Notes: generated from the letters alone by a model not told the origin. 63,972 nt of DNA, filler included, from Olpidium bornovanus S191 (GCA_017911155.1; 25 parts of 25 records of this genome joined end to end with filler, not necessarily neighbours in it), one strand, 5' to 3'. Numbered from the whole stretch's first letter, positions 51,553-54,650 are shown. Numbers and translations are program-made.

Positions 51553-52604
51553 CCGCGGCCGGGTAGCCGGAGCCGCAAACAGGATTTTCCGCCCACCTTT
51601 TTTGATGTTGTTGTAGTTGTTTCTGACCACTGCCGGCGTGCGTTTTCTTTTCTTTTTAATGACAGGCGCCGGCGTACATGTTTTCTTCCGTTTTTGCCGC
51701 CGCAGCGACAGGATTCGCGCTGGAATTGCTACGGGCCCTTTCTCTTTTTTCGCTTTTTTTTTCCGACGGACGCCGGCGTCCAACCCTTTTCTAAGAAAAG
51801 TTTTTCTTTTTTAGGCCAAGGAAGCTGTTGAAGATTTATGGCGCCAGGAGGCGGTCAGGAGGTAATTGTGTGCGTTGTGCACGTTGCCCGTGTCGTTGGG
51901 CGTGTCGCTGCGTACGTCGGAGCCAGAGCCGTAGCCGGAATCCGCGGATCTGCGCCGCCGCCGTTGTGCGCCGTCGCGTGCAGCGTTGTGCGGCCGCGCC
52001 GCCGTTGTGCAGCGTTGTGTCGACAACCCGGCCTGTCCTGCCGCTGCCGCCGTCATCGGCCCTACGCCGCTCGAACGGGGCACCTTTTGCCGCCGCTGTC
52101 GGCCCCCGATGCCGCCACCGCCCGCCTCACCTGACTGCCCTTGGCCGCCGTGACCGTTTTTTTTTTTAAAAAAAGGTTCGCTGGAAGTTACGCGTTTGAA
52201 ATGTGGTGGCGACGGGGGCAGGGTGCCACGCCCGAACGCCGTAACACCGAACGGAACCGCAGCGCCGAGACAAAAAAAGTCAAAACAAGCACGGAAAAGC
52301 CGTGGTGACCATCCCTCCACCCCAGCGCGGAACCGGGTGTACAGGCATGGGGACACCCCAGGGGGAAAGGACAAAGAACTTAGAATGGGGTTGCAAAAAA
52401 AAAAGGCAAGTCTCCAGCTCGCCTGACCGCTGAGCTACCCGCCCATACGTATTGGTTCAAAAGCGGCAAAAAAATGAATCATGNNNNNNNNNNNNNNNNN
52501 NNNNNNNNNNNNNNNNNNNNNNNNNNNTTAATTAATTAANNNNNNNNNNNNNNNNNNNNNNNNNNNNNNNNNNNNNNNNNNNNGGAGGAAGGGGGGGGGG
52601 GGGG

Positions 52605-52637
<33 letters not shown>

Positions 52638-52749
52638 GGGGTCCGCAGCCCAATTGGCGGGCGGGATCAGTTTTGGCAGATCAGCCAATATCGGAAAAAA
52701 AAAATAAAATAAAAAAGGCGCCGGCAACATCTCACTAGCCCCCCACCGA

Positions 52750-54422
52750 AATCAGGTCATTAACTTTCTTGGACTGCTCCAGCTGGGCCTGCGCAGCGCG
52801 AAGACGATCTCCGCGTTCTTTGGAAAGCTCGAGGACCTTGTCCACGAGCGCGCGGAGGAGGCCGGGTTCGTCCGCGAGCGAGGCCGCGGGGGCGGCTTCC
52901 TTGAGCGAAGGGCCGGGCGGCGGCGGCTGCGTCGCGGCGCCGCCGACGGGCTGGTCGGCCAGGAAGGCCCGAAGGTCCGCCCGGATGCCAGCCAGCGCCG
53001 CGGACAGCCCTTCCTCGACCCCCCTGCGGTGGATGTCCAGCGCCGCCGCCGCGCTCTCGTACAGGTGCTTCAGCGCCGCGAGCTCCGCCTCGTGGCGGGC
53101 GCGGCCGGCGGCCTCGGCGCTCCGGCGCGCAGCCTCCGACTCGGCCCTCTCCCGCTCCGCCCGGGCCCTCAGCGCCCCGGCCTCCTCCTCCAGGCGCCGC
53201 GCGCGCTCCTCGGCGGCCCGCGCGCGCTCCTCGGCGTCCTCCCGGCCGGCCGCAATCTCCCGCGCCTGCTCCTCGGTCGCCAGGCGGATCCCGATGTGCC
53301 GGTTAAACAGCGTCGCCACGAACCCGAGGTTGAGCCGCGCCCGGCCGAGCGTGATGTCCCGCGCGGTGGCGAACCTCCGCGCGCCGAGCCGCCCCGCGTG
53401 CTCGAGCACGAGCCGCGCCCGACCCTCCGCGTCCGCCCGCGGGAGCCGGTCCGCGCGGTCGAGCAGGTCGCACGGGACGCGGTCGGGCGTGATCTGCCGG
53501 AGGAGGGCGATGTAGCACTCGCCGTCCGCGAGATCCTTCCCGAAATTGGCGACGGCCCGCCGCGAGCGCGCCCTCTGCAGGTGGAAGTTGATCCACCGGA
53601 GGAGAATCTGCTCCTCGCTCAACTTCAGCATGTCTTTCAGGTTTTCTTTCTCCGGATCCATCAACCGGATCAATTCCGGATGGCTGCCTGTTCGGCGTTT
53701 TATAATAAGGAAAAAAAAAAAAAAAAAAAATAAGAAAAAGCGCAGGGCCACCGCACTGGGGCGAATCATACCTGCGGACCGGAAACGGCGAGGCGGCGCG
53801 CGCAGAAAGCCACGAACCTAGATTCACTTCGCTGAATAGGTGAGCTCGGACGAGCTGCCAAACCAGTCCGAGAACCAGGTCCGCTTTCTTGCCCAGGATA
53901 TCCTCCGCGCCGACGTTCACGACAACGACGTTGTTTAGTTTCTTGATGCCCTCCACGCAAAGGTTGAGGTTTGCCATGACCTCGAAGTAGTCCTTCGTCC
54001 CTCGGGGGTGCAGCCGGCTGACGTTCACGTCCGTCTTCAGCTTCGAGATTTCTATCGTCCCCGGCTGGACCGCATTGGCGAGGTGGGACAACAGAACGCC
54101 TGAGAGGAAAAAACCGTCCCCACCCCCATGAGGAGTAAACGCTCCTGCACAGCTACCCGCTTTCTCCTATCTTCCCCCCCCCCCCACCACCCCCTCACTC
54201 TCAAAATGCTCGCCACGCGGCGGGATAATCGAATTTACCATCGCGAAGGGATTCAAGGAGAACTTCGGGCAATTCGGGGTTTTCCGGAAACGGGAGATAC
54301 TTGGGTTTAAGCGATTCGTTGTTATCCAGGAGGTTTGCGATGTGTTCCATGTAAGCGGCGGTCTCGGAAGCCACTGCCTCCTCTGTCGACGACGTCCCGT
54401 TGGCCCACATGGGTCCCGACAT
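52750..54422 (-). CDS. Fimbrin/plastin-type CH1-CH2 actin-binding domain fused to a coiled coil (3' partial)
   Basis: Exons 54422-54239, 54099-53818 and 53687-about 52750. Motifs LRDGVLLSHLANAVQPGTI, NLNLCVEGIK, VVNVGAEDI, LVLGLVWQLVR, HPELIRL, EQILLRWINFHL, NFGKDLADGECY, LNLGFVATLFN. Confidence 0.9.
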
Positions 54423-54650
54423 CACGATCCGCGTTTTTTTCTGATTTTTTTTTTTGGGGGGGGGATCTGTCGGATGTCGGGCCCAAAGGCGGAGAAGAGA
54501 GGAAGAGAGTAAAGCCTTTCAGTTGCGANNNNNNNNNNNNNNNNNNNNNNNNNNNNNNNNNNNNNNNNNNNNTTAATTAATTAANNNNNNNNNNNNNNNN
54601 NNNNNNNNNNNNNNNNNNNNNNNNNNNNCACCGTCGTCGCCGTCGCCGTC

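Follow-up and report, generated by a model that had tools for sequence, protein, structure and literature searches.

A transcribed Olpidium bornovanus gene that joins a fimbrin-type actin-binding domain to a long helical tail, and a probable two-CH sister family of fimbrin

Gene structure and transcripts

We analyzed a window of 63,972 nucleotides from Olpidium bornovanus S191 (GCA_017911155.1), in which 25 parts of 25 records of this genome are joined end to end with filler, and found that one of its pieces (positions 52584–54528, counted from the first letter of the window) carries a real, expressed Olpidium gene encoding a fimbrin-type actin-binding domain (ABD1, made up of the calponin homology domains CH1 and CH2) and a long helical tail. 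The gene is spliced, has at least four exons, and lies on the minus strand, as do all the features described below. Its 5' untranslated leader (54423–54528) is covered by RNA contigs that extend past the end of the piece, and translation of the upstream frame shows an in-frame TGA (54521–54519) ahead of the ATG at 54422–54420. Exon 1 (54239–54422; 61 codons and one base) encodes a short N-terminus and the start of CH1, with the motif E..AY.EH.N..L, and exon 2 (53818–54099) encodes the remainder of CH1. Exon 3 (52747–53687) contains, in one open frame, the linker between the CH domains, CH2 (53296–53619; exon 3 residues 24–131) and most of the tail. The tail consists of a first helix rich in alanine, arginine and glutamate (52957–53274; residues 139–244), a disordered linker rich in proline and glycine (52879–52956; residues 245–270) and a second helix (52747–52878; residues 271–314). 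The open frame spans 469 codons.

All of the splicing evidence comes from Logan contigs of two RNA studies, X1 and X5; the raw reads of RNA runs X21 and X24 give essentially no coverage (a few reads, on homopolymers). Contigs from both studies skip intron 1 (54100–54238, 139 nt) and intron 2 (53688–53817, 130 nt) exactly, and both introns are GT..AG and in phase 1. The contigs cross exon 3 from end to end without a break, and at the junction between CH2 and the tail they do not differ from the window. The gene model is therefore supported by RNA, and a chimera at the junction, which the initial annotation had raised as a possible artifact, is excluded. At 52746 the contigs cease to match the window (the splice falls between 52747 and 52746) and run on with other letters (393 in one X1 contig, 82 in one X5 contig), and the transcript continues for at least 255 letters past 52747; RNA-contig depth is zero over 52584–52713. 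Because there is a GT donor at 52746–52745, where the contigs leave the window, the TAG codon at 52737–52735 is intronic and exon 4 lies outside the piece; the initial annotation had mistaken this TAG for the end of the open reading frame. The portion of intron 3 that is present (52584–52746) includes a T-rich tract and a C-run of more than 45 where the genome contig breaks.

The first 30 loose RNA letters, translated in frame on the gene strand, read EKVVKFAEKE, which is further tail and not the start of a CH3 domain. Recovery of the 3' exons got as far as this start of the next exon, and the remainder was not found in the metagenome contigs of the Joint Genome Institute (JGI): an exact search of them with the 30-letter loose end gave no match, and a protein-guided search of them with exon 3 gave no relative.

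The deposited model of the gene from the metagenome-assembled genome (MAG) is P0001, 'MAG: calponin homology domain-containing protein, partial [Olpidium bornovanus]', with 429 amino acids. It lacks exon 1, reads through about 20 residues of intron 2 (a SWLSARAASPFPVRRYDSP-type insert) and ends at the intronic TAG. The non-coding parts of the gene contain homopolymers, given here on the gene strand: a C-run of 14+30 (52591–52635), T20 in intron 2 (53711–53730), G12 in intron 1 (54174–54185) and C9A11 in the leader (54445–54464). The genome contig ends at the C-run, and read-based contigs are cut at the homopolymers. At 54025, RNA contigs of both studies differ from the MAG (T>C, Asn to Asp), and X1 contains two forms of comparable depth (30 and 40), distinguished by a change at 54280 (Asn to Thr) and by silent changes at 54309 and 54336; these variants may represent two alleles or two strains. 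One X1 contig (record 5) covers the leader and extends 224 letters beyond 54528, which is either a long leader or an abutting neighbor transcript.

Identity of the actin-binding domain

Wherever this gene entered a search, an alignment, a tree or a fold, it did so as single exons. Pfam finds a CH domain in exon 2 (1.5e-9) and another in exon 3 (residues 24–131; 6.3e-17), and no other family. Compared to solved structures, exon 3 is most similar to CH2 of Schizosaccharomyces pombe fimbrin (1rt8, 3e-30, covering its residues 141–288), and it also matches L-plastin (LCP1), plastin-3 (2e-26) and CH2 of Arabidopsis fimbrin, with fimbrin-type matches in the range 1e-24 to 1e-30. Alpha-actinin, filamin, spectrin and plectin chains have scores of just 0.003–0.05 against exon 3, and its match to fimbrin CH4 is negligible (7 bits). 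Exon 2 matches the CH1 domain of fimbrins and plastins in the PDB (residues 51–137 of 1rt8, and also 7r94). The best solved relatives are thus fimbrins and plastins at both CH domains, in agreement with the alignment proposed in the initial annotation.

The domain is homologous to ABD1 of the fimbrin/plastin proteins (Sac6, Fim1, PLS1-3, LCP1) and shares with them the HPEL..L linker and the motifs LLRW.N.HL and LNL.F.A.LFN. It differs from them in having neither an EF-hand headpiece nor a second actin-binding domain (ABD2, CH3-CH4), and in having a helical tail after CH2. There is no Pfam match to an EF-hand in exon 1, nor in any of 33 relatives, and the stop codon upstream of the ATG also supports the earlier claim that no EF-hand precedes CH1. 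The actin-binding domain is therefore a fimbrin-type ABD1 without the EF-hand headpiece. Only CH1 and CH2 were found, with the helical tail next, so the sequence recovered does not follow the canonical fimbrin plan of four CH domains and two ABDs.

A full-length relative

By a word-index protein search we found a relative of 510 amino acids, P0002, encoded by a transcript-like Logan contig. With exon 3 as the query, this search returned only the deposited P0001 and P0002, and its yield was probably limited because words rich in A, R and E swamped the candidate list. P0002 is complete: its ATG is preceded by an in-frame TAA at a distance of 39 nt, and its codon 510 is followed by a TAA. Pfam finds two CH domains in it and otherwise only sub-threshold coiled-coil noise. 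The HSBP1, liprin and CENP-F matches that Pfam gives in the coil tails are below the cut-offs, and we rejected them as noise of this type.

The exon peptides, each aligned alone, are colinear with P0002: exon 1 falls on its residues 13–49, exon 2 on residues 58–153 (45% identity), and exon 3 on residues 155–452 (34% identity through the tail). The continuation EKVVKFAEKE from the RNA aligns with the next residues of P0002, 453–462 (NKVYQIAEEM), after which P0002 has 48 more residues and no CH3-CH4. Because of this alignment, and because P0002 ends about 58 residues past residue 452, the Olpidium protein as recovered probably lacks 50–60 residues, and a downstream CH3-CH4 is very unlikely. The initial annotation had named exons coding for a normal CH3-CH4 as the result that would overturn it; the next exon instead continues the coil.

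A family of two-CH proteins

The extent of the family became apparent from an exhaustive phmmer search of 1.84 billion representative sequences with P0002 as query, which gave 286 matches below 1e-30; a profile search added few members. We scored the best 150 of the 286 against three separate parts of P0002, its CH1, its CH2 and its tail. Among these 150, 56 consist of CH1-CH2 followed by at least 120 further residues without a third CH domain, 50 are canonical fimbrins, 16 are short, and 5 are arrays of multiple CH domains. Some fimbrin-like proteins (P0003, with 1250 amino acids, P0014, P0020 and P0137) have five to seven consecutive CH domains; in P0003 a single CH1 precedes six domains of the CH2 type.

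In an unrooted maximum likelihood tree of the ABD (107 rows; quick search, LG+C20+F+G4), in which the window is represented by its CH2 only, 52 two-CH proteins and the window CH2 are separated from all 50 canonical fimbrins by a branch with 99% support in the Shimodaira-Hasegawa-like approximate likelihood ratio test (SH-aLRT). The window CH2 falls within a set of 41 rows (100% SH-aLRT) and a set of 53 rows (99%), both of which contain purely two-CH proteins. The other four proteins with only half of the fimbrin architecture (P0075, P0124, P0126 and P0140) are on the fimbrin side of the tree and are probable truncated fimbrin models. Being unrooted, the tree gives a clean split but does not say which form is ancestral. 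None of the relatives on its two-CH side has a CH3 domain, and CH is the only significant Pfam family in all 33 of the 33 aligned members; there is no Pfam match to a spectrin repeat or an EF-hand in either the window or these 33 relatives.

The members come from a broad range of organisms. They include proteins from Capsaspora owczarzaki (XP_004365892, 590 amino acids, labeled 'actin-bundling protein Sac6'), Rozella allomycis (EPZ31339, 477 amino acids, labeled 'Actinin-type, actin-binding domain-containing protein'), Phlyctochytrium arcticum (KAI9105885), the aphelid Amoeboaphelidium protococcarum (KAI3640768), Spizellomyces sp. 'palustris', Corallochytrium (Clim_evm38s201), Pigoraptor chileana, Amoebidium parasiticum, the choanoflagellate Salpingoeca macrocollata, Balamuthia mandrillaris (labeled 'fimbrin') and Thecamoeba quadrilineata. 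The first six of these share the architecture and the tree clade of the Olpidium copy, which differs from them in its unusually GC-rich gene and A/R-rich tail. Their names are automatic and in some cases misleading ('Sac6', 'fimbrin', 'plastin-1'). There is no animal or Dikarya protein among the named members, though no search aimed at those groups was made. The suggestion that the same architecture might occur in zoosporic fungi was thus borne out in chytrids, Rozella and an aphelid, but it is not peculiar to them or to this genome, because Holozoa and Amoebozoa have it too. Judged by sequence comparison, these proteins form an old, unnamed sister family of fimbrin/plastin, represented in Holozoa, early Holomycota and Amoebozoa, of which the Olpidium protein is a member.

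Conservation in the family extends beyond the CH domains. Directly after CH2 there is a conserved junction motif, LFN..IGI.LP(S/T)E.E, for which the window has IGIRLATEE (LFNRHIGIRLATEEQ); the family-invariant G133 is present and I134 is kept. After this junction the family alignment has heptads in a region of variable sequence, then a C-terminal block that is conserved (N..MG.KI.EY.E..I..K), and finally ends rich in lysine and arginine. The Olpidium tail fits the family pattern of a helical heptad tail of about 150–300 residues. Its Pro/Gly-rich linker falls where the alignment is both variable and gapped. The end of exon 3 (KKVNDLIS), together with EKVVKFAEKE from the RNA, fits the first half of the C-terminal motif, and the rest of the motif is outside the piece. 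In deeper two-CH subclades, there is a domain at the C-terminus: C2 in five proteins, including that of Balamuthia, PH in Salpingoeca macrocollata, and vWA in Thecamoeba (the relatives with such ends are P0077, P0113, P0041, P0117, P0123, P0046 and P0102). Several relatives in these subclades also carry N-terminal extensions of 100–500 residues.

A search of the ESM Atlas gave no match at or above 0.9. The nearest proteins in it (CH proteins of Parabasalia, dixin, Hook and NuMA) are unrelated combinations of CH and coiled coil, and we set them aside as look-alikes in architecture only.

The helical tail and a predicted dimer

The tail is connected to CH2 by six residues within the same exon. 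We folded exon 3 with AlphaFold2, using a family alignment of 35 sequences, and obtained a model with a mean predicted local distance difference test score (pLDDT) of 86. CH2 is well folded in this model (pLDDT >90) and keeps nine of the nine CH2 residues that are invariant in the family. It is followed by a continuous helix of 106 residues (139–244; pLDDT 90–98), the 26-residue Pro/Gly linker, which is disordered (245–270; pLDDT <50), and a second helix (271–313) that ends within the C-terminal motif of the family. The arrangement of a helix, a proline-rich hinge and a second helix in one uninterrupted exon is therefore as the initial annotation described it, and its central proposal of a fimbrin-type ABD1 fused to a coiled-coil segment in place of ABD2 agrees with the Pfam domains, the 1rt8 match and the predicted helices.

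The tail probably pairs into a parallel, in-register homodimer, as judged from structure prediction. In a homodimer test of residues 138–314 the score, which is a measure of model confidence, was 0.48 (median of three runs), as compared to 0.00 for the best of three controls. Of proteins solved as pairs of one chain, 21 of 30 reached that mark, as did none of 23 solved as single chains. At least 91% of the contacts are common to the three runs, and the partner chain has a pLDDT of at least 75. The contacts with the lowest predicted error are between residues of the same number (285–285, 289–289, 296–296 and 228–228), and interface residues between 152 and 242 recur at a spacing of 3–4. Same-numbered contacts and this spacing indicate that the modeled structure is a parallel coiled coil in register.

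We also measured heptads directly, by comparing the hydrophobic occupancy of a and d positions to that of other positions in the best register, in 28-residue windows and against shuffled sequences. With alanine given a weight of 0.5, P0002 has a z-score of 7.3, and the Rozella and Capsaspora proteins have z-scores of 5.2 and 4.0, respectively; the relatives score about 4–7 in most weightings. The Olpidium tail scores lower (z about 2.3–3, and about 3 for its first helix). The proposal of a dimeric crosslinker in the initial annotation is supported by the homodimer model, which is parallel and cortexillin-like, with the weak heptads of this copy counting against it.

Base composition and alternative explanations

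The composition of the gene changes sharply within exon 3. GC content jumps from about 55% to 75–83% at about position 53580, inside CH2, and drops again at about 52879. The GC content of third codon positions (GC3) is 0.92–0.96 over 53580–52879, as compared to 0.66–0.80 in exons 1 and 2, at the beginning of exon 3 and in the final helix. This GC island accounts for the A/R/E/G/P-rich composition of the tail (24% alanine, 15% glutamate and 13% arginine, and poor in large hydrophobic residues, whereas the tail of P0002 is rich in E, L, K and Q), and it probably explains the weakened heptads of the Olpidium copy. As the jump lies inside a domain that is homologous throughout, it reflects local substitution bias and not a join, and the island may mark a spot where biased gene conversion is locally frequent.

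Several observations weigh against regarding the gene as an Olpidium member of this family whose product is a coiled-coil dimer. Besides the weak heptad signal, its a and d positions are mostly alanine and glycines break into the helices, and a helix so rich in glutamate and arginine could also be a single stable helix. The homodimer score is the confidence of a model, in a test that rarely reached its mark on eukaryotic proteins without an older solved relative. The nearly invariant proline of the junction motif is alanine in this copy, and the ABD tree does not place the copy specifically with those of chytrids. Its C-terminal 50–60 residues lie outside the piece and were not recovered, so that a basic end is inferred from relatives, and its attribution to Olpidium comes from a MAG made from non-axenic zoospores. 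If the tail did not dimerize, being instead a single stable alpha-helix (an ER/K-type spacer, for example) or a rod with some disorder, the protein would be a monomeric binder or anchor of F-actin and not a crosslinker. The composition of the tail, its low heptad scores and the very high confidence that AlphaFold2 gives to the 106-residue helix even in a monomer speak for this alternative. However, the homodimer model passed while three controls stayed at 0.00, its contacts are in register every 3–4 residues, the column-aligned relatives have strong heptads, and the Olpidium copy has Ala, Ile or Leu at most of the family's a and d columns. For these reasons we regard a non-dimerizing tail as unlikely.

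The same GC island raises the question of decay, in which erosion of the coil would have left a functionally relaxed copy that may no longer work as its relatives do. The GC3 values, the skew towards A, R, G and P, the weakened heptads and the replaced junction proline are all compatible with this explanation, but the open frame of 469 codons, correct splicing and expression in two studies, full retention of the invariant CH2 residues, confident helices and a passing dimer model are not what we would expect of a decaying gene, and we judge it improbable. It is still harder to maintain that the gene is a canonical fimbrin with a helical insertion, whose CH3-CH4 is encoded by downstream exons. 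The gene does extend past the piece into a part that was not recovered, but the known part of the next exon, its first ten residues, matches the C-terminal motif of 33 full-length relatives, in which the chain stops within about 60 residues of that motif, there is no CH3 domain in any relative on the two-CH side of the tree, and the X1 contig runs on for just 393 letters; the chance that this explanation is correct is very small. Finally, the jump in GC content, in a short MAG contig bounded by homopolymers, could be seen as the mark of an assembly artifact in which a fragment of fimbrin was joined to GC-rich, low-complexity DNA. The jump is inside CH2 and not at the domain junction, however, contigs from two independent studies cross the junction, and the tail is colinear with relatives of ordinary composition, so this explanation is scarcely credible.

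Comparison with known actin crosslinkers

Cortexillins I and II of Dictyostelium consist of a tandem-CH ABD, a parallel two-stranded coiled coil and a C-terminal PIP2-sensitive site, and their ABD is of the alpha-actinin/spectrin type. These properties were reportedly described by Faix et al. in 1996 and in later work. The Olpidium protein resembles cortexillin in having an N-terminal tandem-CH ABD, a predicted parallel coiled-coil rod and, probably, a short C-terminal element, but its ABD is of the fimbrin type (1e-30, versus 0.003–0.05), so it would be a functional analog of cortexillin and not a member of its family. Alpha-actinin also has a tandem-CH ABD that is made bivalent by a dimerizing helical rod; its rod differs in being antiparallel and built of spectrin repeats, with EF-hands at the C-terminus, whereas the Olpidium model is parallel. 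Fimbrin itself has two ABDs per chain. Bivalency of the Olpidium protein would instead come from dimerization, and the spacing and geometry of its heads should therefore differ from those of the compact fimbrin core.

By analogy with these systems, the protein is most likely a cortexillin-like dimeric actin crosslinker or a membrane linker. In the mechanism that we propose, the tail would form a parallel, in-register, two-stranded coiled coil that places two ABD1 heads at one end, and the dimer would crosslink or bundle actin filaments in the manner of cortexillin. At its C-terminal end the rod would probably be tied to a membrane or to a second filament, a step that we propose because it is here that sister subclades have their C2, PH or vWA domains. 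The Lys/Arg-rich ends of family members, together with the C2, PH and vWA domains, suggest that the end of the rod attaches to membranes while the pair of ABDs engages actin. We estimate a probability of about three in four for this explanation as a whole, that is, a transcribed gene of an old sister family of fimbrin whose product is an ABD1 dimerized by a coiled coil, crosslinking actin and attached through its C-terminus. Gene structure, splicing, domain identity, family membership and architecture are established by the present data, dimerization is supported by a model only, and actin crosslinking and membrane attachment are inferred.

Significance

Nothing in the full-text literature that we searched, which does not cover subscription papers, describes a two-CH fimbrin with a coiled coil, and the concern that the architecture might already have been described was not borne out there. 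A 2023 study of Dictyostelium FimA (PMC10533516) states that no other proteins share the four-CH architecture of fimbrin, which it describes as strictly conserved. A survey of actin in chytrids and a survey of the filopodia toolkit in unicellular holozoans list just 'fimbrin/plastin'. None of the named members is characterized in the literature that we found, and on present sequence evidence the family appears to be uncharacterized. Labels such as 'Sac6', 'fimbrin' and 'plastin-1' can cause surveys of gene content to miscount true fimbrins.

The finding introduces no new principle, as cortexillin and alpha-actinin are familiar examples of dimeric tandem-CH crosslinkers. What it adds is a second old lineage, in which ABD1 alone would be paired by a predicted coiled coil, often with an end of a membrane-binding type. 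It also offers a natural experiment, in which the ABD1 of plastin has been freed from ABD2 and from autoinhibition by the EF-hands. The family would add a crosslinker, or a linker between cortex and membrane, to the actin toolkit of the lineages that are used to reconstruct the transition of fungi from amoeboid to walled cells and the origin of animal cell motility. More tentatively, and as a proposal that we would not yet favor over its negation, the family may be an overlooked sister of fimbrin that dates from the common ancestor of Amoebozoa and Opisthokonta, with ABD1 only, made bivalent by a coiled coil and tied to membranes via polybasic, C2, PH or vWA ends. Lineages with amoeboid or zoosporic cells (chytrids, Olpidium, Rozella, aphelids, filastereans, ichthyosporeans, choanoflagellates and amoebae) might have retained it, animals and Dikarya appear to lack it, and in opisthokonts it might play the part of cortexillin in the mechanics of the cortex and in cytokinesis.

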